Origin: Macrostomum hystrix
Lineage: Eukaryota > Animalia > Platyhelminthes
Length of the DNA stretch: 64,000 nt
Reading direction: 5' to 3'
NCBI GenBank assembly: GCA_950097015.1
Contig: CATNEN010000002.1
Span: forward strand, 5,146,001 to 5,210,000
A model generated the notes under the pieces. The model was not told where the DNA came from. It saw only the letters and a program-made list of their open reading frames with translations, and ran no database searches. This document shows, piece after piece, positions 21,550 to 58,431 of this stretch. The position numbers and the translations under genes are program-made. The first letter of the stretch is position 1; each line of letters begins with the position of its first letter.

Positions 21550-23189
21550 ATGTTGAAGCCAATTTTACCAGCTACATGGATTATCATTGGTTTGATGGTA
21601 AGCGAGTATCCTGGCTTCAAGTTCATCAAGAGTAGCAGGCTCGAACGCACTTTATTCCATATCGATTTCAGTACATTCGATCAGGAGCTTGCTCGGCGCC
21701 GATAATTGGAACTGTTAATGTATTGTATGTGGACCACAGACGGCACATACCAACAAACTGCGATCGCAACTCGTTAAAAAATCTCTGCGATCCATTTATC
21801 TTCGTTTCAGCCTCCACACCTGCCAAGATTCTCGAAAACTTCGAAGCAACTCAGTTGTCAACCCAGTTTGACAACACACAACAGAGGCTTTTCGTGCCCC
21901 ACAACCAGCGGCTGGCTATATTCCGCTTCAATAATCTGGACCTGAGCCCCAGTGACAGTATCCAGGTGAACATAGAAGTCGATGATTTATTTGCAGGACC
22001 CAACAAAATGTGTGAAATGTCGAAGAATCTCAGCGTTCAGTCCATGACCCTGTTTCCGAACAACACGGTGAGCAGACACTCGACTCGGCAGATAATTGAA
22101 ATGAGCTGTGTGGGCCACACTCTGAGATTTGAAGTTTGGATCACCTGCCAGCCAAACTATTACCAGGTGGGCTGCTCCGTGCACTGCGATCCGAGTCGAT
22201 TCGCATGCAGCCGAGACGGCTCGAGAGTGTGTCCTGAGGGGTTCATGCCTCACGGTGACAGCTGCATCATGAAATCATCAGTGACAGATGACTCGATGAC
22301 AACAGTGTCAAACACAACGGCTACAACTACAACAGCGTCTATTAAGTCGTCAAAAATTGCAGGTCTGTCAACATATTTACCAACAAAATCTTCGACTAGA
22401 ATGCCTTCACCGACAACAGCGTCAACAACAACAATCACCGCGCCAGAAACAGCAGCATTAACAAAGCATTCGGCAGCAACTGCAACAACAATAGCAAGCT
22501 CAACTACACCAGCAACAACAATAACAAGCTCAACTGCACCAGCAACAACAATAGCAAGCTCCAATCACTCCAATCAAGTGGAAATCACCACTTCGGCTAC
22601 GTTTGCTGGCACAGCTACTCTGATACCGTCTATCCAATCTGCAACAACCCATCGATCGACTCTCGCGCCATCAACCACTTCGAGACAAGATCGAACGAAA
22701 TCGACTTGGGTAAACTTGCCTCACATGGTGTACAAATCCACAGCTGCTTCAACCCCACGGTCAACGAAAAGGATAGCAAAAGTGACGCCAAAGCAACTGG
22801 AAGTCTCAACTAGCAGTTTAGTGACTCGAATAGCAACTACATCAGCGTCAGAAGCCTTAACATCAACTGTGGCTGATGCTAGAGGCAAAATTGTTGCTGT
22901 TCTAAACACTGGGCGAAGTAGACAAGCAGGCATTAGCCTCCAGGCGGTAAGCTCTTCTTTAACTTCTAATCCCACAAAATGTTTTTACATAAATTTAATT
23001 TGTTCTGTTTCCACTCTCTCGCAGGTCCTTTGGACACTGATAGGGACTATCATTCTGGTGCTGTGTGTCGTGCTAGCAGTTGTTGTTGGCTTCATTGTCC
23101 ACATCAAAAAGCGCTCAGGCAGACGTCCGTATGTTCGGGTACTGAATTATCCGCTGGATGACCGAGAACTCTATAGATCCGGCAGGTGA
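21550..23189 (+). CDS. Gene A: type I membrane protein with signal peptide, C2/MNNL-like domain, shortened DSL-like domain, Ser/Thr mucin stalk, TM and short tail. Exons 21550-21597, 21672-22946, 23025-23189; 495 aa
   Basis: GT-AG introns with in-frame joins. DSL-like CQPNYYQVGCSVHCDPSRFACSRDGSRVCPEGFMPHGDSC; hydrophobic LIGTIILVLCVVLAVVVGFIV followed by KKR. Confidence 0.8.
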
Positions 23190-24376
23190 GATAAAACAAT
23201 GATAAAGCGGCCACTAATAGAGGAATAGGCGAGATGAGATGTCAATTTAAGGCTTATGTCATGACGTCAATGGGCGTCAATAGGCTGGGAACGTGCCTTC
23301 CGGATTCCAGTGTATTGGTTAAATAAAGCAACTTACAAGTACATGCGAATAAGATAGGCAAACTAGTTGTGATGTACATTGGGGGTAGAGATTGAAAGGA
23401 GAGAGGGTGGCTCTCCAGCCAATAGCAAGATGGGGAGAGAGAGAGACGGGTTGCCAACGAGTTGCCTCGTAATATGAGCAATTCAAGTTATTATTAAGTC
23501 CACATAAACAGTGCAGTGCCAGATCTCGGTGCCCTGACACCACAGCCAAAGAAAGTAGCCCGGGATCAATCCTCGAACCAGACCGACTAAAATTTCAGTA
23601 GCTGGTCGATCCAATCGACAAGAAATGCCAAGATATCTTGCCCCCGTCCTTCTCATGGTATCCATGGTACCCCGGAAAACTCAGCCGGTTTAAGTCGGTA
23701 TGGTTCGAGGATCGACCTCGGGATCGATTCCCCTTTTCACAGTGGAAAAAAAATTAATGCTATTGTGTCACACGAGTCAGGGATTCAGGGATTTGGTCGG
23801 ATATTCTCATACACAATAAATCGGCATCTCTCCGACTTCACAGAGAGCCTCCGTCAGAGTCAGTGGAGCTTCGCTACACCGACTCAGCAGCTGCTCATCC
23901 CGCGGTCTCTGTTGCAGGGGCAGTCTGAGTTTAGTAGCAACTCTGCCTACGGCAAGCAATCTCCTCAACCAGCACGCGAATGGAGCCAGACACAGAGCTT
24001 CTTGTGGCAAGCAGATTAGCTTTAATTAAGGCATTGTTTGGCTTCATCCGTGCTTAATATCGAGGCGGTCAGCTACTTAACTAACAACAATTATAACAAA
24101 CTGCGTGCTTCAATTCCTTTAAATCCCAACACCTATCATTAGATTATTTACTCCAGAAGTTGAATTCAAGAAGAAGATTACGAAATTGTCATAATAATTT
24201 TTTTTCTGCGTTTTCATCGTTAATGAAGTTAAAAAAGTAACCAATATTAGACACTTAGCAACTTTGTAGCTTTGTTTATTGTGACTTGAACCACACCTGC
24301 GTGGTTAAATGCATTAAATTATCTTCACTAATCGCATTAGGACAGTCGACTAAGCTGATCAACTCAAAGAGGTGAG

Positions 24377-24760
24377 ATGTTGAAGCCAGGTTCAGCAGTT
24401 ACATGGATTATCATTGTTCTGATAGAAAGCGAGTATCCTGGTTTCAAGTTGATCAAGAGTAGAATGCCGGAATGCACATTTTATTCCATGTGGATTTCAG
24501 CACATTCGATCAGGAAGCTTGCTCCGCGCCGAAACTGTTAAGGTAAAGTGCGACTACTACAGACAGCACGAACCAGAAAGCTGCGATACAAACTGGTTCG
24601 TCCATGATTACTGCGATCCATATTCCATCGTTTCAGCCTCGTGCCCGGCTGATTCATATTCCTAATCCGTTAGTGTTCCGGTTCACCTATCTGGACCTGA
24701 GTCACATGGACAGTCTCCAGGTGCGCAGAACAGTTAAAGATAAATAACTACCGACGACAG
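24377..24760 (+). pseudogene. Gene B: pseudogene of the C2-DSL-like family
   Basis: Homologous exon 1, but the donor is mutated (GAAAGC instead of GTAAGC); internal deletion, early stop, no DSL segment. Confidence 0.75.
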
Positions 24761-27380
24761 TGTCATGTGCAGTGTTAGAGATCTTTCGTCGATAAAGAAT
24801 CTTTCTGCAAAGTCTGTTAATTTTCAAGTCGAAGCTCGAGAATGTTCTGACATAAGGAATTTATTGGCGCCAACTTGCTGCATGATAAAGTTTTATTTGC
24901 TTTCTAAGCTAACAAAAATTGCAAATGATTCTTTTTTGCGCTTCGTAAATTCAAGTTTCTAACCCTGGGACTGCGTAGTCGACTGCACGGTTAAAGCCTA
25001 GTTTGCGGGATGGCGGGATAGACAAGTCTATTCGATTGTATCGAAGCTGACTTCAAAGCGTTTGTGCTCGCAGTTCTCAGATCCCAGTGCTCATACTATG
25101 TATATGTATCCTAGTGCTTATACTCGTACTATACAATTTTTTTCAATCGTAAAATGTCTATAAAGTTCTGTATTGGCAAACGAGAAGTTTGTACTTTGAA
25201 ATATACAACAAAGTTTGTTTCAAAGTCTACTCAGAGATTCTCTGATCCCCAAAGACACAATACGATCGGAAGTGGTCAGTCATTACATTTCTCAATGTCA
25301 CTTTAGGACAAGACAAAACAGCAACAACAGCGCTAAAGTCCCAGGGAACTGATCAAGGTTTACTACCGATTCGCCGAATTCTCTAATTGATCTATTCGCT
25401 CGATTCTGAACACATTGAATCTACACAATGCCTGCTCTAGCTTATAAAAAGCAATCCATAAATGAAAGTATAAAATATTAAAATATAACGATTTCCAAAA
25501 AGCAACTAAAATGTTACAAACAAGCAAATATTTGTGGGACTTTTTAATTAAAAAAAATTATTTGATATAATTACTTTTTTATGATTTGACTTGAGCTTTT
25601 ATTTTAATTATAACTTAGAAAGTTGAAATTATTTATAATTATAAATTAAGGATTGACTCGTGTCAAATAAAAATATTTAAAATAAGTATTCTTAATATGT
25701 TCACGTTAGCATTTTTTATTTAATTTTTTAATATATTTGTTTACATAAAGTCATTAAGTTATGAATTAAGTCCTTTATTATTATTATTATTATTATTATT
25801 GAAGTGCACACGACGATTGGGTGCTGCTTTTTTATCTTATGTTGGCAACAGGGCTCCCGAAAGGAGAATAGCTATTGTGTTTTTGCGAGTTACTATCAAA
25901 AATATTAGAAAACAAAAACTTAAACTATAGTCAAGCATTCTAACTATGGGCCTCATGGCAGTGGCTTTTTTATCTAGCTTTAAGTATGCATTCTATGAAG
26001 TCTACAAAGCTTTCTGTTAATTATGTGCTTTCCTGAGTCATTAAATACACAATTTTGTCATTAAAGACTCTAAGGCTTTCACAAAGACACGTTATAACAT
26101 ATTCACGCATCAAGGGGCAATATAAAATGTACATTATATTAGAATGAAAGATAATTTAGCAGTAACAATAGCAATAGCAATAGATAGCAATAGATAATAG
26201 CAATAGCAGTAACAGTAAGAATTGCAACTGCCCAGAGTCCAGACTCAAGCAGAGGCTCAGGCGTCTGGGTGCCATGGTGATTGGGGATTCTTGCGCCAAA
26301 TGCTTGCCTTGACGATCCGTGGGATCGGGGATTAATGTACGTTGTATAGCAGGGAGATCACGCATCACGCACGTGAGCAGTGAAATACCTTCACTGCTGT
26401 CCCAGCCTTGACCCAGCGCGATGAACAACCGAGCCCAGCCGGGCTCCGATTGGCCTGACATTGTACAGTAAGCCAAGAGAGGTGGGCTGGGTGCGATTAT
26501 GCAACGTACTAATTAATTATAATTTCGCTAATTTGTGAATAAATTGGGCTTCACACAAACTAAGACGAAAATCGAAGGTTAAATGACAGTCACACTTGAG
26601 GGAGCCATGTAAAACAATGTCAAGCGGACGAGGAGAGGGCGCTTTAAGGCATTCGAGGGGTCCAGGTGATGACTCATCAGTGCTCCGGCTTCCCAAACAG
26701 ATCTAAAGCCTCTTTTAAAATTATATTATGCGGTAAACTGCATGCAGTTGCTAGGGATTCCATTAATCTCGACTTTTAAGTGTAACTTTGGAACATCACA
26801 ATGCATTAGGGCCATATATTTTACTAAAATTAATAGATTTACTTGTCAAGGGCCTTAAGGGTCACCTACGATACGCGTTACTCAAAGTTGCTCTATTGGG
26901 CATTATTGAACTGTACTCCCCGAATGACCATTGATTGACCAAACTGTAGCCACTAAATCGTCGGAAAATGAATTGGATTGGTGCTTATAGCTATGTTCTG
27001 TGAGTTTTTCGACACTTCGTATATCACGGTTGAAATACTGGTCTAACAATCCAACAAACCTTACAGATTTAGTATTGTGCGATAATCAGGAATTCTATAA
27101 AGTGTAGAATTCCGTTTAAGAATAAATGCGATTTGACGCAAATAAATATACACGAAAATAAAATCGATTGTACATTGCGTCAACAAAAAGAAAAATAACT
27201 ATAGCTGACTTTCTGGCCTGAACTTTGTTTAACTGCTTATTTATTTTTAAATCACGACGCGAATAAATATTTCAAAATAGTTTTATACGATACATGCCGT
27301 GTTTAACTACCGAACTTTCAAGCTACAAAGAAAATTTCTGAAACATTCACATAACGTGCGTTGCTGCACTGCTTCATCGC

Positions 27381-29732
27381 ATGGCGCACGCCAGACTGCG
27401 TCGACATTGCTTCTCTACATTATTTCACCTGGTAACAATCAAATCAAATTTCACCATTTGATAGCCACTGGTCTTTCTTTTCACTTTCTAAGAAAATAGT
27501 TCAATATCTCCAATGCAAAAATAGACATAAGTACTTCTAACATAAAAGGTCAAATCCGTTGCAGCTGGTCTGTCTCAGCTCAGCCTCATCAGTCTCTGGA
27601 GCAGTCGCTGAAACATACTCTGGAGCAGTCTATGTGAATTTCGATTCGTACAGCCAGCGGGATCCTGACAAATGCGACTCGAATTGGTTTGGAACAGACC
27701 ACTGCGATCCCTACTTCACAACTTCTGTGTCGATACGGTCGAAGAGTCTCGGATCATTCACGTCAACTGAATACGACAATGCGAATAAAGTGATCCATTT
27801 CGGAAATAAAATAGGCCAGCTCTCCAACCCACTCGCTTTTCCATTCACCAACTCAGCACTGAGTCCGACTGACAGTCTCCAAGTGTCCGTTACAGTCACA
27901 GATAAAAACCCTGGCGGTGACAGCCTAATGTGTGCACTGTCGAAGTCTCTCAGCGTTCAGTCCATGACTCTGTTTCCAAACAACACAGTGAGCAGACACT
28001 GGACTCCGCAGAGCTTTGAAATGAGCAGTTCGGACCACACTCTGAGATTTGAAGTTTGGATCACCTGCCAACCAAACTATTACCAGGCGGGCTGCTCCGT
28101 GCACTGCGATCCGAGTCGATTCGCATGCAGCCGAGACGGCTCGAGAGTGTGCCCTGAGGGGTTCAGGCCTCTTGGTGACACGTGCATTTCCACAGACAAG
28201 TGCATAGAGCGAGGCCCTGACTTCTGCCAGAATGGTGGAAAGTGCGAAGTTAACCTGCAGTCACAGCCGGTCTGCCAGTGTCCCATGAACTTCACCGGAT
28301 CTCGTTGCGAGCTGCACACTCATCCGTGCCATCGCAATGCCACGTTGTGCATCCATGGAGCCTGCCACACATCCGACAGTAACGGAACTTCTGAGTGCGT
28401 GTGCGAGAAGGGATTCTTGGGATATCATTGCGATGAGGACGTGGACGAGTGTCGATTGGTCAATGGGCTCTGCGGGCACGATGGTGAATGCGTGAACTCC
28501 GTTGGCAGCTTCAGGTGCGTCTGTAAAGACGGCATTACAGGTGCTCTTTGCCAGATTCAACTGCACACACCTCATAGCATAGTGAGTCCTGGTAGTGTGG
28601 CCACGCCGCGTTCAGAGCCGCCTTCATCTCTGACGGAGAGAGTGAGTGTTTTTGGTTGACCGTGTTGGTTCAAGGCATTAGTTGCCATGTGAAATTAGAT
28701 AAATGACTTCTATTTGCAGCTCACTTTGCCGATATTAATGCTGGCAGTCCTAATGATAGTCGTGTGCGCCCTGACTGGCATTGTGGCTGTTATCATGATT
28801 TATAATCGGAAACGGTCTTCCGGAATCCAGTTACGACTTGCAGGCAACGCGTTTTACCAACCGAATTCGTGAGTTGTTTTTAAGCATTTAAAAATGAAAT
28901 ATCTACCTACATGGATTGGCAATAACGTTTTTAAAAAGACTCATGGGTTTCTCCTTTTCATAAACTTCAATAAATGTGTTTGTGAATGTTGTCCACTGCA
29001 TGACGAAAATGGACACTGGAACATCATTATGTGACAGCAGAAGCGCAGCTGAAACATTCACATAACGTGCGTTGCTGCACTGCTTCATCGCATGGCACAC
29101 GCCAGACTGCGTCGACATTTCTTCTCTCCATTATTTCACCTGGTAACAACCAAATCAAATTTCACCAGCGAGGAGGCAATTCTGTCCATTCTGCTGAATC
29201 CTGAGCACACACGCACACTGATGCTGTACGCAGGCACACTGCCTTGGACGTAAGGCCCACAAGCGCGCAAATTGCACGATGAGCCCTAAGCCCCTTCTCT
29301 CAAAAGGCTGCTCCCTAAATTAGTATGGCCCCGTTGCGGAATCGAGCTCTGGGACCTTGGTACGAAAGAGGATAACGCGTTATATAGACCACTCTGCCAC
29401 GCACCCCCTGATATTCTACGACAATAGTCTAGAGTTATCCTACGTCCGATTCCAGGTCACTCCCCGTGACACTACAGGAGACTCTACCGAATGAAGATTG
29501 CGTGGAAAGCACATACTACGAAGAAGTGGATGACGGGCCCGTAGCGGCAGCTGAGCAGAACTCATCACTGGGTGCTCAAAGTGGCACAGGTAATTTTTCG
29601 AACGCCGCCTACGACGGAGCTCAACCGGAGCTGGCGCAGCTGACGCTGAAGTCGCGCAGCTTTTCTAAGAAAAGCAGTCAGGCTGAACAGCAAATTCCGT
29701 CGAACAGCAAACACTTAAACAGACCCTCATAA
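27381..29732 (+). CDS. Gene C: Delta-like type I membrane protein with C2/MNNL-like, DSL-like, 3 EGF (last calcium-binding type), TM and Tyr-rich tail. Exons 27381-27431, 27565-28641, 28720-28868, 29456-29732; 517 aa
   Basis: Phase-consistent GT-AG splicing. EGF patterns including EDVDEC...CVNSVGSFRCVC; TM LPILMLAVLMIVVCALTGIVAVIMIY. Confidence 0.8.
29049..29167 (+). repeat. Duplicate of gene C exon 1 with its donor site (source 27338-27456) inside the last intron of gene C
   Basis: About 119 bp near-identical; ATG at 29092 and GT donor at 29143 are retained. Confidence 0.9.
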
Positions 29733-32003
29733 ACGTCTATTTCTCGACGTGAATGAGATCAAATGAACTCGGATACGGTGTCAGAGCTGAATTGAGGTCA
29801 GGGAGAAAGGAAATTACAAACTAGATTGTATAATTGGTAACTTGATTTTTCTTTTATCATGCGTTGTTTCGTAAAAGGTAGGTAGATCATATTTACAGGT
29901 TCACATCTAAAGCCCATCAGTTTTCCATTAAACTGTGATTAGAGCATGTTAAAATGCATGATATTTTCTTTAAACCATATTTTAGATTGTTATCCGCAAT
30001 TTGTGAAATGTGGCCCCTTAACTAACTCCCCCACCCCCATTTGAATAGCGATGTGGCACACAGCTCTTGGCTGGTGTGGCTTCAGCTAAATCTGTTTATT
30101 CCATTTCCGTTCTGTGCTGGGCTCGAGCGAAAATTATGGCACCGCGTCAAGTCACGCACACACGATCCTTAGATGCAAAAGAAATGAGCTGTTTCAGAGC
30201 TATATTTCTACTGGCTTCACGAATATTGTTTGTGCAGCACATTTATCGCGTCTGAATGATCAACTGAAGATATGAAAATTTAGCTAGCTTTTTATTTCTC
30301 ACATCTGACTATAATCGTTTACACTACATATGATTCTAATTGTGTTCGTTTAATTGACTTGAACTTGTGCGGAAAATATTCTAAATCAAATTGCATGCTT
30401 GTAACTTTTCTTTTTATCTACTTAATGCTGCCTTGCCACACTCATTATACATGTACGCAAAATTAGCATGTGAAAACAATACATGTGAATACGAAATTTC
30501 TATATTGAGTGACATAATGCAGTGTTGACTCAGCCCATATGCCTCTTATATATAACTGCCGCAATTTATGAATATAAATCTTTGTGCATATTTGTTACTA
30601 ATTTGTTTAGAACTTTCCAGTCAAGACTGCGTCTGACCCACTGAAAGTCTGCAACTAAATTTTTAAGACAACTTCGCTATCCAGATATTTTTCTAAAGTT
30701 TGCCACACTGTTTTCGGCATAAGATCTGAATCCAAAAATATTCTGTCTTTGCTTCCTTACAAAAAACTGCATAATATCAGGATGATATTTTCTTGTGAAA
30801 GTGCAAGCAAACTTGAAGGCTTTAGAGAACAATAGTAAACTGCTTTCTGTTCGTAGCAGCAGAACTTATTTAGTGCAATGACGAAGTTTCGGTTTCAACG
30901 AATAGGCGTAGCAGTTTCGGTTTATTTTAATAGCCAGGTAAATTATCAATCGTTACAAAACCTTCGTAGCGGAAAGCACTCTCATGCAGTAAATTGGGCC
31001 TTCGAATTAAGAAATCGTCTTTACGGCTAATGCTGGCTATATCTTAGGTGGGTTACAGAGCTACTCAATGGATTCACTTGAAATACAGCTACGGCTACAG
31101 TTCAGATTAGCCACTGACAAAATAACAACCAGCACTCAGTCGTATAACAAGCCTGGGGGGCGGGAGCCTTCCTGGAAAGGCCTAATTAGCACATTTGAAT
31201 ACGAACTACGACTATGTAGTACACTAAAACAAAACCATTATAAATATTAATGGAAAACCGAAGAGATATCCCTAACAAATATAGCTAGCGAAAATAATGC
31301 ACATAATTAGAAATAGCATATTAAAATTACATTAAATTAGAGAGACAACATCACACTCGCCTCCCTCTCAGAAGCTTAATGGCCTACTAACAGTAGTGGC
31401 TACGAACATCGAAATGGCTAGCGAAAAAAACGATTTCAGAATTGTTGCTACGTTATTAGAGTTTTTTGAATAGCTGTCTAGAGATATTTTGAAAATGAGG
31501 TTAACAATGGCAGTTTCAAGTGACACAAAAACAGGCATTAAATTTCAAAGACGAACGGCAAAAACGGAATATCGAGTGGCAAAACTGAACGACGAATGGC
31601 AAAAATTCGAACAAAAACCAAAGGCAAAATTCAGCAAGATATTGGCAAATTGAACAACGTCATCAAACCGCAGAGGCAATAAAAGGAATTGAAAATATTT
31701 TTGTTTTAGCAAATGCAATGTTTTTTTTATTTTTTAAGCAAAACTGACAAATTGACAAACACGAGAATTGTCTAGGACAGGCGAAAATTTCGGCGAATCG
31801 GCGGCGGAGCGAAAACCTGGACGGCCAGGCTACAAACAATGACTACGACAAAGGCTTACACTATGGCCAAAACCAAATCCGAAGATTCAAGGCTCGACCG
31901 CAGAGATACTAAACTAATGACAAAATGAAAAGATTGGCGAAAGCTATTAAAGAAAAGCTAACAGGCACACAGAACACAGGCAGCATACGACACGACTTAC
32001 ACC

Positions 32004-33968
32004 TTAGCTCTCGTTACCTCTCCTGAGCAGGTTGACCAGCGTGGAAAGGAATCTGACCGGCGGCCTTACTTGCCGGCCGGACCTCGTAACAGTGCAAGCT
32101 GGTCTCTGTACCTGGTCTGTCTGATCGTATTCGTGTTCATGTTCATGCTCGTGTTCTATTTGTGGTTGTGGTTCTGGTGGCATATTGGTTGGTATTGGTG
32201 TTGCCTGAGGATCTGGATTTAGCTCTGCTGTGACTTCAACTTCCGCACCGATGTCTGGCACCTGTTCATTATTGACAATGTTTACTGCTCGTGGTGCTTG
32301 TTCAGGTTGCACCTCGGGTGGTGACTCTGGTTTAGTGACTGGTTGAGCATTTGGCTGTTCCACTGGCAGTGTTTTGATGGCTGTTGAACTGTCTGTGTGA
32401 TTGGCTGTTGAACTGGCTGTGTGATTGGCTGTTCGACTGGCTGTGTGATTGATGACGATTGGCTTCTTGGAAAAGGTTTCGACAAGAGTTCGGTGGAGTC
32501 GGTGCGCGTAACTGTCCGGGTCATAGCAATCTTGCCTTGGTGGGTTGTAAATCAGGTCTAGGGGCATTTGAAATTCACGGCCCAGAAAAAGCTTAGCAGG
32601 TGTCATGCCCGTCGATTCGGATTCTAGAGAGCGGATGCTCATTCCTACACACCTAGCGGCAAAGGGCCAAGTCACATGCCTCTCAGCACAGACTGCTCGA
32701 ATTTGACTCTTAATAGTCTGGATGTTGCGTTCCACCTTCCCGTTGGCCTGGGGGCGGCGAGCAGTGATTCTAACGGTATCGATCTCTAGCAAGCGGGTCA
32801 GCTCTGCAACAATGTTATTTATGAATGCTGTGCCATTGTCCGAGACCATTTGCTCCATAGTACCATAGCGAACAATCCACTCTGTCAGGATTGCTGCCGC
32901 GGTTGTCTCGGCAGTTACGTCTTTCACAGGGACAATTTCCACAAATCCGGTGAATCTGTCAATCATTACAAGCAGATACCGGTAGCCTTCCTGTTCAGGG
33001 AACGGTCCGCAATGGTCTACATGCACGACCTGGTTCGGGTACCCGGCTAGGGTTGGCTGCATCGGAGCTTTGTTCTTTCGCTTGCATTTCTTAGTCCTAG
33101 CGCAAATCTCACATCTGGCTACGACTTCCTTGACTATAGTTTCTAGGTTCGAGATTTGAAAGTTCTTTTTTACCACTCCTAAAGTCTTTTTTATCCCCGA
33201 GTGATTAACGGCTCTTTGGTAGTTGGTCACTAGTTCATCTACATTCGCAGACTCAGGGATGACCGTAAGCTTGGCAGCGGGCTTCCTTTTCTTGGCTGGC
33301 TTGTTCCGAAGCAGCAGATCTTCCTCAACAGACAGTTCGTCAAACATAGCCCATAAGGCTCTGAGCTCACGACTGCAACCTTGGAGCTCCTGCTTAGACA
33401 ACCTCTCTACCTTTCCAGCTACGAGTACAGCATCTCTCAGGAAAACAAGATCAATGTTCGAATCCTGAGCACTACGGGCCCATTCTCTTTCTCTCTGTTC
33501 AGCCCCCGCCTCATCTTCGTTATCACTGCCTGGGTCTAGAACTTCGTCTGCGATCGTGGACCTATCCGAGACCTGGACTTGCACAGCATGTGCTGCGGCT
33601 GATGGCGGTGTTTCCGGTTTAGGTTTGGTGTCTACCTGAGTACCTGCAGACGAGGTTGGGATGACTGGGCGCTTGCTAGCTTGATTAGGCACAGGGATCT
33701 CAGGGACCCGTTGGAGGTCAGTCTGAACTGCTAAGTCTGTAACCGGCTCATTTTGAAGCTGAATCGCTGAGTCGAATATCAGCTCGGTGGTCTGACAGCC
33801 AGTTGTGACAAGAGTCTGAGTACTGACACACATACGGCTGATTTTGACCTCACTAACATCCGATGGCGCTGATTTTTTTCCCTTCTGGAACTTGAATATA
33901 AATTCCGGGATCAGGCTACAGGTTGGGCAGTCGAAATGGTCTGCTCTGAACTTCGGGTTGCGACTCAA
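32004..33968 (-). CDS. Gypsy pol C-terminal part: spacer, HHCC zinc finger and rve integrase
   Basis: HSGIKKT..CEIC; VHVDHCGPF; VSDNGTAF; PQANGKVERNIQTIK. Confidence 0.9.
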   Translation of the reverse strand: MSRNPKFRADHFDCPTCSLIPEFIFKFQKGKKSAPSDVSEVKISRMCVSTQTLVTTGCQTTELIFDSAIQLQNEPVTDLAVQTDLQRVPEIPVPNQASKRPVIPTSSAGTQVDTKPKPETPPSAAAHAVQVQVSDRSTIADEVLDPGSDNEDEAGAEQREREWARSAQDSNIDLVFLRDAVLVAGKVERLSKQELQGCSRELRALWAMFDELSVEEDLLLRNKPAKKRKPAAKLTVIPESANVDELVTNYQRAVNHSGIKKTLGVVKKNFQISNLETIVKEVVARCEICARTKKCKRKNKAPMQPTLAGYPNQVVHVDHCGPFPEQEGYRYLLVMIDRFTGFVEIVPVKDVTAETTAAAILTEWIVRYGTMEQMVSDNGTAFINNIVAELTRLLEIDTVRITARRPQANGKVERNIQTIKSQIRAVCAERHVTWPFAARCVGMSIRSLESESTGMTPAKLFLGREFQMPLDLIYNPPRQDCYDPDSYAHRLHRTLVETFSKKPIVINHTASRTANHTASSTANHTDSSTAIKTLPVEQPNAQPVTKPESPPEVQPEQAPRAVNIVNNEQVPDIGAEVEVTAELNPDPQATPIPTNMPPEPQPQIEHEHEHEHEYDQTDQVQRPACTVTRSGRQVRPPVRFLSTLVNLLRRGNES

Positions 33969-33978
33969 AACATCCGCA

Positions 33979-35352
33979 TTAACGTGGGATTCCCCAGCTC
34001 TGTGGGAGATTTTTAAATCGTACTCCGCTAGTCTGGTCTACCTTGAAGGTGTAAGGCTCTAGTGTGACCAACCATTGAGCGAGCATTCCGGTTGCGTGTT
34101 TTTTTGAGTGTAACCACTTCAGAGCAATCGCATCTGTTCGCACTAGGAACTCCCGGTCAAGTAAGTAAGTCCTGAACTGCTCTAACATGAGAACCAGACC
34201 TAGGAGCTCCCTCATGGTGGCGCAATAGTTTCGCTGCGCGCTGGTGAATTTTTTAGAAGCGTAGGCAATCACTTGTTCTACGTCGTTCCCATCTAGTTGG
34301 GAAAGGACTGCTCTCACACCGTCAAGGGAGCTGTCGCAGTCTAGAACAAAGGTGCCCGCTGTGGGACTCAGCTCTGGGTATCTCAGCACTGGTGGATTAC
34401 ATAGGCTGGACTTTAGTTCTTGGAAAGCGGCCTCGTGCACTTGGCGCCAAACAAATTTCTCAGAGCTCTTGGCTAGGGCATATAGAGGCGCGGCTATGAT
34501 GGAGAACCTAGGGACAAACTTTCTGTAATAATTGGCAAATCCCAGGAAGGAGAGAAGCTGCTTCTTATCCCTAGGTGTACACCACTGTTGAACGGCCTCA
34601 GTTTTGGTCGGATCGGCCTCTATCCCTTTTGAGGAAACTATGAATCCCAGAAACTTCAGTTTGTCCTTGAAGAGCTCACACTTCGAGGGTCTGATTTTCA
34701 GATTCGCTTTTCTAAGCTGTCAGAAAACTAGCGCCAGATGGGAAATCATCTCGTCGTTGTTTCCGGCCTTGATGATGACATCGTCTAGGTAAATTAGGCT
34801 AACCCTGAGCAAAAGAGGGCGGAACACGCGGTGCATCAGCCTGGCGAAACTTGCAGGCGCGGTCTTGATCCCATAGGGGACTACGGTCCAACGAAAGGTG
34901 CCCTGGGGACATGAGAACGCGGTGAGGTCTCGGTCAGCTTCCCGGATCCCTACCTGCCAGTAGGCGCTCGTCAGATCTAAACTACTAAAGACGGCGGATC
35001 CCGCTAAGTTATCGAAAGATTCGTCTATTAAAGGCAGTGGGAAAGAGCACGGCTTTATGTGCTTGTTAAGCGCACGGTAATCTACGCAAAGGCGCCATGT
35101 ACCGTCCTTCTTTTTCACAAGCACAATGGGTGAGGCCCACTCGGAGTCGCACTCTTCAACAACTCCTTGGTTTAAGAGCTGGGCGATGTACCGATGATCC
35201 AGAAATTCCTTTTGCGCTGGGGTTGTTCGCCTCGATGGCTGAGAAATCGGGCGACACTTCGGGTCCTTTAACTCGATTGACAGTTCATGCAGAGGGGTTC
35301 TACCGATGTCTGCTTCCGATTTTGAGATCTGGCTAAGAAAATAGTTCAGCAT
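33979..35352 (-). CDS. Gypsy RT and RNase H (frameshifted)
   Basis: WASPIVLVKKKDGTWRLCVDYRALN; LDLTSAYWQV; YLDD; LDCDSS...QRNYCATMRELL. Confidence 0.9.
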
Positions 35353-35354
35353 TT

Positions 35355-36200
35355 TTACTGTCGTATCCAGCTGTCGAATAATCTGGCACTAACAACGTCA
35401 TACGAACTGCTCTCAGCGTCTATAGCCCTAGCTGGGATCAGCGTTTCTGAGCGGGGTGGCAGGACTGTATCGCAAGCGGCCACAACGCGATTCACGCTAC
35501 AGATCGCATTGGTGCCGCGAAAAATTGGGACGTACTCTCCAGCGCAGGTCACACGGTCACAGGCCATGTCCATGACGATTTGGAAATTACCACAGAAGTC
35601 CAACCCTAGCAGGATCTCGGATAACTGGCCTTTAATCACTAAGAAGATGTGCTGCTGTTTTAATTTGCCTAAACTCACTTCGCACTGGAGCTTGCCTAGT
35701 ATTTGCGAACTAGCCCCATTGAAACCAGTAGCTGTGCGCTGGGTGCGAGCAGGGGTGAAGACATTATTGATTGGATCAGCTTCTAGGAGCTTGTCTCGCA
35801 TCTTCGGGCAAATCAGGGAGGCATTGGCACCGTGATCTAGAAGGGCAACAGTCTTGGTCTCGCCAATCTCAACCTGAACATAGAATCCTGCCTTGTATCT
35901 CGGTAGGTCTGAAGACACTTCAGCACACTTAGGGTCCGTCGACGTAGCTGTCACACTAATAGCTTTGTCTCTAGACTTGCCAGCGTCGGCGACACGGCTG
36001 AATGTCACGCTGGTACCCACTAGCTGGTGGCTTAAGGCCAGGTCCAACAGGGGCTGGACCAACTGAGACAGCTGGTGCGCAAAAACAGAGTCGCCTATCT
36101 GAGAGGACTGGATGAACCCGTAAGAGTCTTTCCAATGAGTCACTACCCCCTTCTCTCTGGGTGGCCTCGAACTCGCATTTGGCTTAAAACTTTTTGGCTC
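35355..36200 (-). CDS. Cold-shock-like domain followed by aspartic protease (start of the pol frame)
   Basis: EKGVVTHWKDSYGFIQSSQIGDSVFAH...VGTSVTF...KAISV, then ALLDHGANASLI and ILLGLDF. Confidence 0.75.
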   Translation of the reverse strand, partial: EPKSFKPNASSRPPREKGVVTHWKDSYGFIQSSQIGDSVFAHQLSQLVQPLLDLALSHQLVGTSVTFSRVADAGKSRDKAISVTATSTDPKCAEVSSDLPRYKAGFYVQVEIGETKTVALLDHGANASLICPKMRDKLLEADPINNVFTPARTQRTATGFNGASSQILGKLQCEVSLGKLKQQHIFLVIKGQLSEILLGLDFCGNFQIVMDMACDRVTCAGEYVPIFRGTNAICSVNRVVAACDTVLPPRSETLIPARAIDAESSSYDVVSARLFDSWIRQ

Positions 36201-37260
36201 CCAAAGGGTTGCGGGGTCCTGAACTTCGAGGGTGGCGCACCAGTACCTGGCTCTCTAGGATAGGGGCATTCGGCAATGAGGTGGCCAGTCTCGCTACACC
36301 TGAAGCATTTAGGTAGGGCGCCGCTCATTCGGGCATGACTAGAGTAGTCCTGGGGGGACTTCTGAGATTGAAAGTTGTGCCTATGGCCACCACTGTTGCT
36401 ATTAGTAGGTTTCTGCGTGCTTTGTTGTGGCCCTGACTGTTTCTTCTCCAGCTCTGCTATTCTCGCCTTCAGGGCTCGGATCTTGTCTGCTTCAACACTT
36501 CTAACCTTGGGTTGCTCAGTCAGTTTGAGCAGCTGCCTAGTTTGATCTGTGTCTCGAGCCCTAGCTAGGAGTCTCTCCAGTGAAGCCCTGGGTGCTTCAT
36601 GCAGCATATTGATAAGTTTTTCGGCAATAGTTTTGTCAGCCAAGCCATAGCAAAACCGCGTCCTTACTAGGGGCTCGTACTCAGAGCGGCTCATGTCCGC
36701 GGCATTTGCTAGGCCTATGAGGCGGTCAAAATACTCCTGGATACTCTCCGATGACAGCTGTTGGGCTGAGGTTAGTTCTATATAGTATTTATCTACGTGG
36801 GTTGGCTCGCCATACCAGCTTCTTAGACTCTTCACTGCTTCATCAAAGCTTTTCTCGTGCAGTCGATAGTTGTAAAAGAACTCTTGGCACTCGGGTGACA
36901 GGGATGAAAGCAACACTGCTGTCCGATGCTCAGGCATGATCTCATTGGCTTCAAGAAACAGGCGGAATTGCGTCCACAGATATCAAATTTGGTTTTGGGT
37001 GTGTAGGCAACTGGGGGTCTGAGCCGAGGGCTCGATTTCGGTATTCTAGAACTGGTGCTGGTGTTGTCACGGATTTGGGCTAGGGTTCTGGCGAGGTCAC
37101 CTAAGGAGGTCTCGCGCTCCGACTGCTCACCTCCCTCCATCTCCACCTCAGCACCTCCTGCTGTCCCAGGCCCATGGCCGATGCTCTCCTCTGGTCCCTG
37201 GCCTGACGATGCTGCCCCTGACTGGTTGACTTGGTCGGTATCTGAATTTACGCCTGACAT
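36143..37260 (-). CDS. Gypsy gag with CCHC zinc knuckle (one frameshift near 36.93 kb)
   Basis: QQLSSESIQEYFDRL; RTRFCYGL; CFRCSETGHLIAEC. Confidence 0.85.
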
Positions 37261-39641
37261 GACTAGAACTCAGACACACAACTAGAAAAAGAGGAGCGAA
37301 GAACGAGCTAGGCCTACACAAGAAAGAATGTGGCAGTTTACAAATGATTGAGCAACAAGTCTAGTACTAATGGTGGTCCTAAGTCTAAAGTTACTGCCAC
37401 AATAGATCCTAATATAATAATAATAATAAATAATTGAACTCAGCCTTAGCTGCAACCACCAGTTCCGAATCTCGGCCGCCGTTGTCTTCGGCACACCGCT
37501 TAGTTCGCCAAGGCAATCGGCAAGGTTCGGCTCGACCAGGCTTGCTGCACACCGCTCGGTTCGGTTCGGTTCAGCTTGGCTTGGCTTGTTCGCAGATGGC
37601 AGGTGCCCTTCAGTCGCAGGCCCGTTCAACCCGCGAGGCGATGCTCTGATGATACCCGATTGTTGTTGGCCGCTGTTGCAACTGCAGGCTGGCACTGGCT
37701 GCCGTAGTAGCTGTTGTCGTGAACAGCTGGCGTAGGGCCGCTGCTGCCGGCGCTTGGCTAATTGACTGCTATTGCTGATGTTGTAAGTGACGACCCGGCG
37801 GCAATGCTTTGCAGTGCTAGCCTGGCTCGCCTAGTCCACAAAAATCAAGCGGGGCGGAGGCCGAGAAAACCCTTAGACAATCGATTACAATGGCTAGGCG
37901 CAGTTCAACAGACGAGAGGGGTGGCGCTCGACGGGCTAAAGCATTGGGGTTGTTGCGCTTGCAATTAAGAGTTGATTAGGCGTGCTTAGTGGTCACGTGC
38001 TTGGACACAGGCGTACAGCGCAGAGGTTGGCTGGTTGTCTGACCCTCCTTTAGGCTTAGCGTCTGACTCACTCTGCGAAGACACACTGCCGATACGCTTA
38101 AGCTGATAAAGTTGGTTGTTGTTTACTTTCTCGATCGTCTATGTAGTAGGTAGGCTGTGCCGTGAACCGATAGTGCTGAATCACTGTTGGACTTTAGTAG
38201 ACGGTATACTTGGGATCTAATTAATGATGAGCATGAGCTAGCTTTTTGACGAATGACGATGGTCGATGACCGAGTTCGAATTGTCTTTGACGGTGGGTCC
38301 TCCAAATTTATATGACGAAGTTTCGGTTTATTTTAATAGCAAGGTAAATTATCAATCGTTACAAAACCTTCGTAGCGGAAAGCACTCTCATGCAGTAAAT
38401 TGGGCCTTCGAATTAAGAAATCGTCTTTACGGCGAATGCTGGCTATATCTTAGATGGGTTACAGAGCTACTCAATGGATTCACTTGAAATACAGCTACGG
38501 CTACAGTTCAGATTAGCCACTGACAAAATAACAACCAGCACTCAGTCGTAGAACAAGCCCGGGGGGAGCGGGAGCCTTCCTGGAAAGGCCTAATTAGCAC
38601 ATTTGAATACAAACTACGACTATGTCGTACACTAAAACAAAACCATTATAAATATTAATGGAAAACCGAAGAGATATCCCTAACAAATATAGCTAGCGAA
38701 AATAATGCACATAATTAGAAATAGCATATTAAAATTACATTAAATTAGAGAGACAACGTCACAGTGCAATAGGCCTCTAAAAATATATTAATTCTTCACA
38801 ATGATAAATTTACGCAAAAAACAATTTGTTATAATTCAAAGAATATTTTCTGAAAAAAATTTTAATATTTTAAAAATATGTTCTCAATAAAATTTGTTTA
38901 AATAAGCGCTATTAAAAATATATTCCTGTAATAAAAATTTTCTTTATAACCGCAAATAAAATGCTATATAAAGGGAGGGTTTTTAGAGAGAAAATTAACC
39001 CTCGTGTGCCTTCGGGACAAACAAGTGAATAAATATACCAAAGGTTTTAAGAGTTAATCCTTATCTGGATCTATACTTGAACAGAGTGTTCAGAGAAGGA
39101 AAAAGATTTAACTGAACAAGAGAGTCCAGAGGACATATAACAGTTGACCTGAATTGGATATTCAGTGGATAACCAGTCGAGTAATTCCCGAAAAAGTACA
39201 TTCGGAAAGTAAAACCCGAATTTCGGAGTTTATCCATAGGTGATTCGAAGGCCTATTGCTGTGACCCTCTAATCTACAGGTACGCCTGACGGATTAAGTG
39301 CATAACCGGTGCTAAAAGGACCTCTCAGGCCACGGATACACGGAAAGGAGAGAGAGAGAAAAACGCTACCCTAGAGGATAAAGGTGCAAATAAGGAATAT
39401 CTTCGGAACATTCCTTGAATAGCAGTTCCTTCTGCTTGGTGGCAGCACTACTAGTAATAAATAGTAACTTTTGGTAATTAAAGGGTAATAGTAAGAGTGT
39501 AATATTACAGTGGAGAATCTTGAAGAGAGAGCCCTAGAGCATTAGCATTTTCGACTCCATTTCGATATAAACAAAACCTTTAATACTTTATAACTTTCAT
39601 TTACGCTTGAAAAATAGGCTAATTTAGTTTTCTTAGTTAAC

Positions 39642-40085: not shown

Positions 40086-40675
40086 TCGCGGCTAAGCGAA
40101 CCAAACCTTAATTCAAATCCAAGTTGCAGCCATTTTTGATAGATAGATAGATGACACTAACTCAAAGTTGATATTCTCAATTAGAAATCTCAAAGCATTG
40201 TATAGTGCGTTTCCATGGCTAAAAGTTCACTATCTACAATTTTTTCTGAACCTTTCGCACAGCACGTGGCGATATCTCGGCCTTTACTATGCACCAAAGT
40301 TTCGACAACAAGTTCTTGTCAGATCAGATCAGATCAACAAATTCTTGCTATCACTATAGAATTTTGTGCACGCAATTAAGCATGCGTCATGCGCGACATT
40401 GCTGTGGTGCAAATGCTATAGCCTTCCCTCAATATTCACATGATTGTTTACACCAATGCCGCAAAATGATACACTTTTTAGCTGCTGTACGAGTACCTGC
40501 GTATGAACCAAACAACGCAGATAACACAAATTATCACCCACATAATCGGCTTCGCGCACAAACACATCGCCACAAAGGCCTTGTAGTCAGTGCAAGTGTT
40601 TAAGCCGCTACAAAATACAAGCTTCACTAGTCGCATTAGAACAGTCGACTAAACTAATCAACTCAAAGAGGTGAG

Positions 40676-42719
40676 ATGTTGAAGCCAATTTTACCAGCTA
40701 CATGGATTATCATTGGTTTGATGGTAAGCGAGTATCCTGGCTTCAAGTTGATCAAGAGTAGCAGGCTCGAACGCACTTTATTCCATATCGATTTCAGTAC
40801 ATTCGATCAGGAGCTTGCTCGGCGCCGATAGTTGGAACTGTTAATGTAAAGTTCGTCTACTACTACAGACAGCACGGACGGAACTGCAACATTTTGCCGC
40901 ATTACTGCGATAAATCATTCTTCGTTTTGGCCTCAACGTCTGCCAAGATTCTCGGAAATTTCCATTTTAATCTGTTTGACCCCATACAACAGAGGATTTA
41001 CTTCGGGAGCCACATAGGTCAGCTGGCTAATCCGCTCATGTTCCGCTTTACTAATCGGGACCTGAGCCCCAATGACAGTATCCAGGTGAACATAGAAGTC
41101 ATTGATTTATTTGCAGAACACAACATAATGTGTGGAATGTCTAAGAATCTCAGCGTTCAGTCCATGACCATGTTTCCAAACAACACGGTGAGCAGACACT
41201 GGACTCGGCAGAGCTTTGAAATGAGCTGTTCAGGCCACACTCTGAGATTTGAAGTTTGGATCACCTGCCAACCAAACTATTACCAGGCGGGCTGCTCCGT
41301 GCACTGCGATCCGAGTCGATTCTCATGCAGCCGAGACGGCTCGAGAGTGTGCCCTGAGGGGTTCATGCCTCACGGTGACAGCTGCATCATGAAATCATCA
41401 GTGACAGATGACTCGATGACAACAGTGTCAACCACAACGGCTTCAATTACAACAGCGTCTTTAACGTCGTCGAAAACTGCAGGTCTGTCAACATATTTAA
41501 CAACAAAATCGTCGACTAGAATGCCTTCACCGACAAAAGCTTCAACAACAACAATCACCGCGCCAGAAACAGCAGCATTAACAAAGCATTCGGCAGCAAC
41601 TGCAACAACAATAGCAAGCTCAACTACACCAGCAACAACAATAGCAAGCTCAACTACACCAGCAACAACTATAGCAAGCTCAAATGCAACAGCAGCAACA
41701 ATAGCAAGCTTAACTGCAACAACAGCAACAATAGCAAGCTCAACTACACCAGCAACAACTATAGCAAGCTCAACTGCAACAGCAGCAACAATAGCAAGCT
41801 CAACTACACCAGCAACAACAATAGCAAGCTCAACTACACCAGCAACAACAATAGCAAGCTCAACTACAACAGCAACAACAAGCGCAATAGCCACCTTTTC
41901 GACAACATTCATTTCAACAGCCTACTTTACAAAAATAATATCAACAGAAATGTCTCACAGAGCAAACATTGCTGGTTCATCATTTAGAACAGTATCGCTG
42001 CCTACCACCAGTGAGTCGAAGCGGCGCAACGTTTTGACTAGCAAGAGCATGAATTTCGAATCGACAGAACAGAAGGTTCAGAAAACAACGGAGAAGACTG
42101 GCCCAGTGGAAATCACCACTTCGGCTACGTTTGCTGGCACAGCTACTCTGAAACCGTCTATCCAATCTGCAGCAACCCATCGATCGACTCTCGCGCCATC
42201 AACCACTTCGAGACAAGATCGAACGAAATCGACTTGGGTAAAATTGCCTCACATGGTGTACACGTCCACAGCTGCTTCAACCCCGCGGTCAACGAAAAGG
42301 ATAGCAAAAGTGACGCCAAAGCAACTGGAAGTCTTAACCAGCAGTTTAGTGACTCGAATAGCAACTACATCAGCGTCAGAAGCCTTAACATCAACTGTGG
42401 CTGATGCTAGAGGCAAAATTGTTGCTGTTCTAAACACTGGGCGAAGTAGAAAAGTAGGCATTAGCCTCCAGGCGGTAAGCTCTTCTTTAACTTCTAATCC
42501 CACAAAATGTTTTTTACATAAATTTAATTTGTTCTGTTTACCACTCTCTCGCAGATACCTTGGACACTGATAGGGACTATCATTCTGGTGCTGTGTGTCG
42601 TGCTAGCAGTTGTTGTTGGCTTCATTGTCCACATCAAAAAGCGCTCAGGCAGACGTCCTTATGTTCGGGTACTGAATTATCCGCTGGATGACCGAGAACT
42701 CTTTAGATCCGGCAGGTGA
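40676..42719 (+). CDS. Gene D: paralog of gene A with a longer mucin stalk. Exons 40676-40723, 40798-42474, 42555-42719; 629 aa
   Basis: Same exon structure as A. The apparent frameshift near 42.5 kb falls in intron 2. Nine 30-bp units (IASSTTPATT-like) at 41611-41880. Confidence 0.8.
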
Positions 42720-42884
42720 GATAAAAAATGATAAAGCGGCCACTAATAGAAAAATAGGCGAGATGAGATGTCAATTTAAGGCTTATGTCATGACGTCAAT
42801 GGGCGTCAATAATCTGAGACCGTGCTTTTTCGATTTCAATTAAAAAATACACAGCATTTCAGCAGTGTATTGGTTAAATATAAT

Positions 42885-43200
42885 TAATAATAATAATAAT
42901 TCAATAATTGATTACACCTGCCACAATAGGGTCAGATGTGCAGCCGACAGCACAGCCGCAGCTAATGCGCGGCGCATCTGAAGGCTGCGTACGGCTGTTC
43001 AGTCCATTGACTGGGGGGACGCCACACCCACCTTCAATTATCCCAGCTAATGCTGGTACCCATTTAACAGCTGGGTGAACTGAAGCAATGCAGAGTTAAG
43101 TGTCTTGCTAAAGGACACAAATTGTTCCAGTGGAGACGGGAATCGAACCCCCGACCTTCAAGTCGTGAGTCCGACGCCCTAACCACTAGGCTACAACCCC
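42885..43200 (-). mobile_element. tRNA-derived CORE-type SINE with (ATT)n tail
   Basis: Minus strand: A box TAGCCTAGTGG, B box GGTTCGATTCC, then CORE-like TGTGTCCTTTAGCAAGACACTTAACTCTGCATTGCTTCAGTTCACCCAGCTGTTAAATGGG. Absent at the paralogous site in copy 1. Confidence 0.8.
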
Positions 43201-44333
43201 CAATATTGCTTATATTATATGCTTATATTGCTTAAATATAAGCAACTTATAAGTATTGTGTCACACGAGTCAGGGATTCGGGGATATGTTCGGATATTCT
43301 CATACACAATAAATCGGCATCTACGACTTCACAGAGAGCCTCCGTCAGAGTCAGTGGAGCTTCGCTACACCGACTCAGCAGCTGCTCATCCCACGGTCTC
43401 TGCAGTGGTTGCTGGGGCAGTCTGAGTTTAGTAGCAACTCTGCCTACGGCAAGCAATCTCCTCAACCAGCACGCGAATGGAGCCAGACACAGAGCTTCTC
43501 GTGGCAAGCAGCTTAGCTTTAATTAAGGCATTGTTTAGCTTCATCCGTGCTTAATATTGAGACGGTCAGCTACGTAACTAACAACAATTATAACAAACGG
43601 CATGCTTCAAGTGTTTTAAATCCTGATACCTATCATTTGATTATTTATTTTAGAAGTAGGCATCAACATAAAGATAACAAATGTGTAGTTGTATAACTTT
43701 TTTGCGTTTTCGTTGTACTAAAATCAGTTCCCTTGTCTTTTAGATCACAATTCATGTGCCATTGTAACACAATATATCTAAACGACACTTTATAGCTCGT
43801 ATAAATACGATAATTCTTGGTTATGCTGTAATTTATTTACCGATCTACAATTGGTAGCCAATAATATGTACGAGTAATTACGATATCTGCGGTTATGAGC
43901 AGTAGATTTAATCATTTTTGCTTAATTGTCTTGCGCCCTGAATCCCATGCCCAGATGCATTACAAATAAACTGCTTCACTGTTTTGTCAAGTTTCATTTG
44001 ACGAATTGAACGTTGATGGCTGAGATTCTTTCCATCTTGACACAATGTTTAGTAGGCGACGAAGTAAAGGCACTAGAACAAAAACATAATGTTCGTAAAG
44101 TAACCTAAATTAAAAACTCAACAACTAAAAACAATAATAACGCTACAATACAAAAGAAGAAACCTTAAAGAAAGACAAATTAATTTAAGAAATCATAAAG
44201 CTGCGAAGCCAATTAAAAATTTCTTTGTAATTGTTTCGTGACTTAAACCACACCTGATTGGTTAAATGCATTTAATTATCGTCACGAATCGCATTAGGAC
44301 AGTCGTCTAAGCTGATCAACTCAAAGAGGTGAG

Positions 44334-44817
44334 ATGTTGAAGCCAAGTTTACCAGCTACATGGCTTGTCATTGATTTGATGGTAAGCGAGTATCCTGGTT
44401 TCAAGTTGATCAAGAGTAGTAGGCCGGAATGCACTTTATTCCATATCGATTTCAGCACATTCAATCAGGAGCTTGCTCCGCGCTGGAACTGTTAATGTAA
44501 AGTTTGGCTACTACAGACAGCACGAACCAGAAAGCTGCAATGCAAACTGGTTCGTCCAGGAATACTGCGATCCATATTCCATCGTTTCAGCCTCATCGCC
44601 TGCCAAGAGTCTCGAAAACTACAATTCAACTGAGTTTGACAAAGCACAACGGGTGATTCATTTCGCCAGCCGCATTGGTCAGATGGCTAATGCGTTCGTG
44701 TTCCGGTTCACCTATCTGGACCTGAGTCCCAGGGACAGTCTCAAGATGCGCAGAACAGTTAAAGATAAAAACATGCCGATAACAGCGCAATGTGTGTTAG
44801 AGATCTTTCGTCGATAA
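44334..44817 (+). pseudogene. Gene E: pseudogene of the C2-DSL-like family
   Basis: Exon 1 and donor are intact, but a 7-nt deletion relative to A early in exon 2 shifts the frame; sequence ends before the DSL segment. Confidence 0.75.
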
Positions 44818-51340: not shown

Positions 51341-51345
51341 CGTTA

Positions 51346-57092: not shown

Positions 57093-57115
57093 TTTTCAGC
57101 CCCGAAAAAAAATAT

Positions 57116-58402: not shown

Positions 58403-58431
58403 TTTTTAAACTAAAAAAAATAAAATAAGAA

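Follow-up and report, generated by a model that had tools for sequence, protein, structure and literature searches.

The gene array and its transcripts

A window of 64,000 nucleotides from the flatworm Macrostomum hystrix (assembly GCA_950097015.1, contig CATNEN010000002.1, positions 5,146,001 to 5,210,000) was analysed, and all positions given below refer to it. Between 21.5 and 44.8 kb, it contains five paralogous units, designated A to E, that resemble genes for Delta-like Notch ligands. The array is real, it is transcribed and it is undescribed in the literature searched. In agreement with the initial annotation, which had counted five paralogs in about 23 kb, open frames were found in A, C and D, and B and E are broken (Table 1). 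The three head peptides quoted there for A, D and C are present as well. The C2-DSL heads lack both elements by which solved ligands contact Notch, and the C2 core of A and D has changed rapidly. With a likelihood that we put just short of even, the array encodes a Delta-like surface family, non-canonical for Notch, with a partly positively selected C2 tip that would bind lipids.

Gene A encodes a signal peptide, a C2 (MNNL) domain, a DSL domain, a Ser/Thr stalk of ~205 aa (43% S+T), one transmembrane (TM) segment and a tail of ~50 aa. D has the same layout with a stalk of ~339 aa (45% S+T). EGF repeats after the DSL domain are absent in both. RNA-like contigs revealed a third intron (23186–23843 in A) and a fourth coding exon in A and D, leading to products of 522 and 658 aa, respectively; according to these contigs, the stop codon past exon 3 is located inside the intron donor. 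C also starts with a signal peptide, C2 and DSL, but differs from A and D by another exon 1, three EGF repeats in place of the stalk, another TM segment and another, longer tail of ~110 aa. All three proteins have an N-terminal hydrophobic stretch and one 19-residue segment (mean hydropathy 3.0–3.3) followed by basic residues, for which a type I topology is predicted. The tails contain one YxxV each, with no context of an immunoreceptor tyrosine-based activation or inhibition motif (ITAM/ITIM). Within the tail encoded by exon 4 of C (29456–29732), an FxNxxY/NxxN pattern and an acidic Tyr motif of the YYEEV type were observed, both of which are kept in the Macrostomum lignano protein P0026 and which we take to resemble endocytosis or PTB-binding motifs.

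Intron 2 has 78 nt in both A (22947–23024) and C (28642–28719). In A, it is stop-free and in frame, so that a retained intron would lengthen the protein by 26 residues ahead of the TM segment. The last intron of C contains a second copy of the 5' untranslated region (UTR) and exon 1 (Table 1), which retains the donor and yields only a short peptide when spliced to exon 4. This copy could either be left over from a partial duplication or serve as an alternative start.

Self-comparison showed that a unit of ~5 kb is present twice, as A+B and as D+E, with C and a Gypsy element in between. The gene birth and death assumed from the beginning is borne out by this duplicated unit and by the broken B and E. 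Collinear units that are near identical in parts would also be expected if the assembly had placed two haplotypes of a single locus one after the other. Such an artefact is, however, very improbable, given the divergence of 12% between the units in non-coding DNA, the position of C and the Gypsy element between them, the presence of D-specific together with A-like transcripts in a single run and the highly inbred line from which the M. hystrix assembly was made (PMC10468722).

Pseudogene B has lost its intron-1 donor (GA) and carries a 71-nt deletion at ~24641 as well as a late frameshift/stop at ~24745. In E, the frame is shifted directly after the signal peptide, where the sequence is 7 nt short of A and D, and again at ~44772; the position of the late frameshift is common to B and E. 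The 7-nt gap as a lesion common to both was rejected, as an additional base in B makes up for it and leaves B in frame at this point. Neither DSL nor TM nor tail was found behind the two heads, which are head-only remnants. In the C2 frame of B and E (24531–24740 versus 44485–44769), 14 non-synonymous changes were counted versus one synonymous change, an excess that is not significant (p = 0.06–0.3). B and E may have been functional after the duplication.

Eight runs from one organism and two studies contain ~0.9 of the words of 27560–28870, and four runs were aligned to 21460–27459. The runs are probably RNA, because this share is the one expected with only the 78-nt intron missing. Their contigs are taken as evidence of presence only. 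C is transcribed, as a 1760-nt contig from two runs joins exon 1 to exon 2 and carries exactly the 24 differences of C from A in the shared tract. For introns 1 and 3 of the A/D type, GT..AG joints were found in RNA-like contigs. D is transcribed as well, with a contig that has exactly the 20 differences of D from A over 21921–22144. An exact match to the variable block of A was not seen among the aligned contigs. Expression of A and D, a point to be checked according to the initial annotation, was therefore found for D and for further head variants, but not for the exact tip of A. One A-like contig has 29 substitutions and 21 gap positions relative to A over 21706–21958, where D would have 69. 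In another one, which carries a second organism label, 14 substitutions and 12 gap positions were counted over 21701–21965, versus 5/245 differences in a stalk contig of the same run. Altogether, the extra A-like heads diverge by 5.5–12% plus indels and the stalk by ~2%. These variants, which occur in two runs, and a 934-nt contig with a mixture of A-type and D-type bases may represent alleles or else paralogs from beyond the window. A contig of 202 nt, which may be RNA or DNA, matches B exactly. In run X4, a contig with a joint from 21986 to 24810 combines A-like C2 sequence and a B-like 3' end with 18 other letters in between; it possibly stems from a further B/E-type paralog with a complete head, perhaps a secreted C2-only form.

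Table 1. Position of the genes, pseudogenes and associated features in the window.
Feature	Position	Strand	Remarks
Gene A, 522 aa	21550..23928	+	exons 21550-21597, 21672-22946, 23025-23185, 23844-23928
Gene C, 517 aa	27381..29732	+	exons 27381-27431, 27565-28641, 28720-28868, 29456-29732
Gene D, 658 aa	40676..43425	+	exons 40676-40723, 40798-42474, 42555-42715, 43335-43425
Pseudogene B, C2 head only	24377..24900	+	without DSL/TM
Pseudogene E, C2 head only	44334..44940	+	without DSL/TM
Duplicated unit 1 (A+B)	20986..25778	+	self-BLAST and unit alignment; unit 2 (D+E) at 40109-45776
Variable block of A	21722..21925	+	end of β1 to β4 of C2 including apical loops β1-2 and β3-4; elements from models
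Variable block of D, approximate	40848..41045	+	counterpart of A 21722-21925
Conversion tract (last C2 strands and DSL)	A 22007..22267	+	C 27927-28187, D ~41127-41387; identity 91-94%
Second copy (97%) of C 5' UTR and exon 1	29049..29167	+	within C intron 3 (its last)
Ty3/Gypsy long terminal repeat (LTR) retrotransposon between C and D	30913..38763	-	LTRs 30913-31355 and 38319-38763, 97.8% identical; not a family member

Fold of the heads, Notch-contact sites and relatives

Database searches and folds were run on single exons or exon parts, and the spliced models were used only in alignments and in a local comparison with the window and the loci retrieved. The DSL family (PF01414) was matched by C with 26.0 bits (cut-off 24.2), followed by A with 23.8 and D with 23.3 bits, and the six DSL cysteines are conserved. 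No single sequence matched Pfam MNNL (PF07657). When A, D, C and eight relatives were combined in a profile, it matched Drosophila Delta and Jagged-1 with E ~1e-23. An eight-stranded C2 plus DSL is present in the AlphaFold models of A (pLDDT 73) and D (pLDDT 81). The best structural matches were all Notch ligands, with Jagged1/DLL at the top of the Foldseek results and a value of 0.94 for the Atlas MNNL/DSL cluster. The model of the D head was similar to the C2-DSL of DLL1/Jagged/Delta with Z 12–12.8, namely to DLL1 (VIA) with Z 12.8 and a root mean square deviation of 3.0 Å over 163 residues. The succession of a Notch-ligand C2 and DSL in the first description agrees with these fold and profile matches, and the heads of A, C and D are predicted to have the C2 (MNNL)-DSL fold of Notch ligands.

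Solved structures of ligands show two contacts with Notch: site 1 is a long β2-3 loop held by a disulfide, and site 2 is the DSL domain (10.1101/101394). Notch binding is lost with the substitutions JAG1 F207A or Delta F204A (PMC3888931, PMC8490980). Both sites are absent in A, C and D as well as in their M. lignano relatives: the β2-3 link consists of four residues with neither Cys, and the DSL loop with JAG1 Phe207 / Delta Phe204 is deleted. The deletion comprises five residues compared to DLL1, and also compared to Delta and Jagged1. Judging from these alignments, the whole Macrostomum subfamily, and not just A and D, does not consist of canonical Notch ligands. Asp is kept in A, C and D at the aligned positions of JAG1 Asp72 and Asp140, which are Ca2+ ligands (PMC3888931). 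The subfamily may retain Ca2+/lipid binding; the role known for the C2 loops of Notch ligands in lipid preference is solely that of tuners of Notch signalling (PMC8490980, 10.1101/101394).

The loss of both contact sites independently favours a repurposed Notch-ligand scaffold, as had been suggested for the array. Together with the missing EGF repeats of A and D and the fact that, to our knowledge, developmental Notch ligands rarely show such turnover, it makes it improbable that the proteins still act in the Notch pathway, be it as divergent ligands or as decoys/cis-inhibitors whose C2 loops would tune lipid-dependent signalling with a co-evolved flatworm Notch. Such a role would nevertheless agree with the Delta-like C2-DSL(-EGF)-TM layout, with purifying selection on C (ratio of non-synonymous to synonymous substitution rates, dN/dS, of 0.24 relative to its M. 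lignano counterpart) and with the NxxN/FxNxxY-like stretch of the C tail, presumably of the kind used for endocytosis. It would also agree with the lineage-specific, fast-changing Delta-like genes, with duplication, that are reported from molluscs and tunicates (PMC8166818, PMC5882950).

All of the closest proteins come from M. lignano, with ~57–66% identity to gene C and near-saturated synonymous sites. The counterpart of C is Mlig025798 / Mlig013027 / Mlig008026 (PAA50828, PAA76360, PAA76706), and Mlig020628/Mlig015439 are more distant. There is one gene per locus, and tetraspanin and cadherin genes adjoin in two of the three loci. The three copies, which are 98–99% identical in the head, share layout and exon plan with C (identity of 64% in the C2 core, 66% in the EGFs and 69% in the TM segment) and likewise miss the Notch sites. 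They differ from the M. hystrix array in that the copies are near-identical, with no variable array seen, and they are annotated as hypothetical or EGF-like. Neither an A-type gene nor an array was found within 10 kb of the three C-type loci or the two loci of distant paralogs. A further M. lignano protein, UniRef A0A1I8FXK2 (P0001), is known from a gene model alone, with no DNA record found. Its TM segment and tail are homologous to those of A/D (55% identity, NYPLDDRE motif), while its head is 95–96% identical to the C-type gene and, provided that the gene model is right, homogenised rather than variable. Since an A/D-type TM segment and tail follow a C-type head in P0001, the A/D tail exon must be old, and from this comparison the fast A/D head looks lineage-specific. 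In a word-index protein search, the A head gave no match, the C head one M. lignano cluster and P0001 only M. lignano proteins; no relative was found in metagenome contigs. Literature searches on the Mlig identifiers, on Macrostomum Notch-Delta-DSL and on converted or selected DSL arrays found nothing, which is not proof of absence.

Gene conversion and divergence between A and D

As described initially, exon 1 is identical between A and D (0/48) and the 74-nt intron 1 has one difference (1/74); intron 2 is identical too (0/78). The divergence was 5.7% in the tract of C2 end and DSL, 2.7% in the late stalk and 3.1% in the TM exon. Values of 13% and 12% were obtained for the 3' UTR and the B/E flanks, respectively. 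In the variable block, the two sub-blocks diverge by 50.7% (21722–21800) and 24.8% (21801–21925), plus in-frame indels. Their amino acid identity is 43% and 56%, and 58% over codons 31–125. The heads had been said to differ at most residues and by indels; the indels are confirmed and are all in frame, but only about half of the residues differ.

With 1/200, the differences in exon 1 and introns 1 and 2 are far too few for a unit with a non-coding divergence of 12.4% (p = 1e-10). Because these flanks were recently converted, intron 1 is not a clock, and its use as a neutral clock was rejected. An exon that outpaces its intron had been regarded as the sign of a recognition family. This contrast reads largely as the product of gene conversion instead: the intron was homogenised, and in the variable block synonymous sites diverged as much as non-synonymous ones. 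The scaffold, which had been considered constant throughout, is so between A and D, whereas C shares with them only a tract of 260 nt comprising the C2 end and DSL (91–92%), with a saturated C2 core. From this contrast between tract and core, a second clear conversion is deduced.

Selection on the heads was analysed with our own GY94 code on seven sequences (A, D, B, E, C and two M. lignano copies) and ~95 codons, where B was entered as two pieces parted by gaps. A and D grouped together with 16 log-likelihood units over the alternatives, but not in the first sub-block. Their branches had a dN/dS of 1.08–1.12 versus 0.15–0.23 in the background (p = 4e-5), which supports the earlier view that the C2 domain of A/D changes far faster than the conserved paralog. 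The DSL tract had a dN/dS of ~0.55–0.67, and loop 1 of A versus B/E reached 2.7–3.2. The proportion of non-synonymous differences (pN) in the variable block was 0.30 versus the non-coding divergence of 0.124 of the unit (p = 5e-8). In a branch-site test with A, D and their stem, twice the log-likelihood difference (2dlnL) was 16.3 (p = 1e-4), with about half of the sites at an omega of 5.6–7.3 and a class dN/dS of 3–7 overall. It amounted to 12.1 without gap-adjacent codons, 18.1 on the automatic alignment and 15.1 with separate branch lengths per sub-block. The five-taxon statistic of 18.8 was higher than all 42 null simulations (maximum 13.1), which comprised 14 simulations each for a relaxed null, a relaxed null with mosaic ages and a relaxed null with double hits. 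With C and B/E as control foregrounds, the branch-site test was not significant. Taken from these codon patterns, episodic positive selection on the A/D head is probable, but not proven.

Several points weigh against a selected C2 tip. The pairwise dN/dS of A and D in the variable block was 0.91 on the automatic alignment and 1.06 with the first loop of D re-aligned, and the block average is not different from 1 (p = 0.3–0.9; p = 0.75–0.89 for the A/D branches). For the block average, this is the refuting outcome that the initial annotation had named (dN/dS at or below 1 in the variable block), and a value above 1 was obtained only for the site class. The strength of the site-class result also depends on the model: when double substitutions were allowed, 2dlnL was 4.1 (p = 0.04), 0.9 (p = 0.34), 6.8 (p = 0.009) and 8.8 (p = 0.003) in four settings, the one with p = 0.34 being that with gap-adjacent codons removed. 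The loop alignment is ambiguous, codons and sequences are few and each null comprised only 14 simulations. Furthermore, the proportion of synonymous differences (pS) is raised as well, with 0.22 (confidence interval 0.12–0.33) and, in the two sub-blocks, 0.30 (11/38 versus 0.124, p = 0.005). With both pN and pS raised, part of the variable block may predate the unit or have been imported. Mapped onto the structures, the changes between A and D span strands and loops of the C2 core, with indels in or beside the apical β1-2 and β3-4 loops; the enrichment of changes in the apical loops was not significant (p = 0.07). In ordinary Notch ligands, too, no other part varies as much as the C2 loops (PMC8490980).

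Relaxed constraint with patchy conversion is a serious rival and a possible, though less likely, explanation. A and D would be spare copies drifting near a dN/dS of 1, the variable block would be the unconverted part or an import from an older paralog, and B and E would show the end state of such copies. Reading frames, the Cys pair, the Ca2+ aspartates and the DSL cysteines that are intact despite a dN of 0.3–0.5 do not fit such drift, nor do several indels that are all in frame, a branch-site signal that survives the mosaic simulations or the values for loop 1 versus B/E and for the DSL tract. The pairwise dN/dS, the low divergence of the flanks compared to the expected 12.4%, the transcribed A/D mosaics and the loss of branch-site significance in the strictest setting are in line with it. 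The same applies to the first sub-block, in which the distance between A and D is not smaller than their distance to B/E (stem length 0–0.1).

Possible function, surroundings and known systems

For a surface family with a partly selected, lipid-binding tip, which is the favoured explanation, the course would be as follows. C is the old, slowly changing member, and A and D arose with B and E by tandem duplication of the ~5-kb unit. In A and D, a Ser/Thr stalk, presumably O-glycosylated, takes the place of the EGF repeats and carries the C2-DSL head outwards. Exon 1, introns, DSL, stalk and TM segment are kept alike between the copies by gene conversion, which has also copied the DSL tract between C and A/D, whereas the C2 core escapes conversion and would have been pushed apart, partly by positive selection. 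With its Ca2+ aspartates, the C2 tip would most likely bind the head groups of lipids or glycolipids on an external membrane, such as that of a microbe, of prey or of another worm's cells or sperm, and different copies would prefer different targets. It is doubtful, and would go considerably further, that a Notch-ligand head without Notch binding has turned into a positively selected lipid/glycolipid-recognition module on a mucin stalk that serves microbe, self/non-self or mate/sperm recognition. The immune, self/non-self and mating roles are inseparable on the present sequence data.

If true, a natural series of heads in which the Notch-contact sites are missing, the Ca2+ pocket is retained and divergence is rapid would give the first indication that this module is able to act in recognition on its own. 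A, D, C and the M. lignano counterpart of C are a ready panel to learn how loop sequence sets lipid specificity. Non-self recognition in flatworms is poorly known, and Macrostomum allows RNA interference and in situ work. Without selection, the locus would still illustrate clearly how exons can appear to outpace introns through conversion.

The window also contains other elements. The Ty3/Gypsy element has a weak match to a cold-shock domain before its protease (PF00313, E 4e-4). Intron 3 of D contains a tRNA-like element (42966–43200; Rfam RF00005, 36.5 bits), which is the only Rfam match, is 82% identical to the M. lignano loci L001/L002 and probably is a tRNA-derived short interspersed nuclear element. 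Inverted copies of a 450-nt repeat (96%) are located at 39638–40085 and 50901–51345 and match M. lignano loci over 70 nt. Remnants of a hAT transposase were found at 48380–50311, followed by a Polinton/adintovirus-like element at 55600–64000 with a match to an A32-type ATPase at 60298–61134 (Pfam scan of three open reading frames). A single-exon open reading frame at 1562–2602 encodes a spondin-like TSP1 and two Kunitz domains.

Compared with canonical DSL ligands (Drosophila Delta, human DLL1/DLL4/Jagged1), the array has the same signal peptide, type II C2 head directly followed by DSL, single TM segment, Ca2+ aspartates (equivalents of JAG1 D72/D140) and variable apical loops. It differs by the missing disulfide β2-3 loop and Phe207 loop, by the mucin stalk of A/D in place of EGF repeats, by tandem birth-and-death with conversion and by a head dN/dS near or above 1. 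The lineage-specific short Delta-like proteins known from molluscs, tardigrades and tunicates (such as Haliotis 'jagged-1-like' XP_046370051 and Hypsibius OQV23954) share the C2-DSL with few or no EGF repeats and a Thr-rich stalk, as well as duplication and rapid divergence (PMC8166818, PMC5882950), but most of them keep the β2 Cys/long loop. No report was found of conversion-bounded, possibly selected variable heads in such proteins. C2-DSL proteins with a long Thr-rich stalk were also observed in a tardigrade (P0010, Hypsibius) and in abalones (P0020, Haliotis), and the stalked layout thus arose elsewhere too.

Variable recognition families of invertebrates, such as FREPs, Transformer/185-333 and Hydractinia Alr, are characterised by tandem clusters, pseudogenes, conversion mosaics and a variable distal domain on a conserved stalk/TM. 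The array differs from them by its fold and by having no ITAM/ITIM. It shares with them the tandem cluster, the birth and death of copies, the conversion mosaics and a variable head on a conserved stalk and TM segment.

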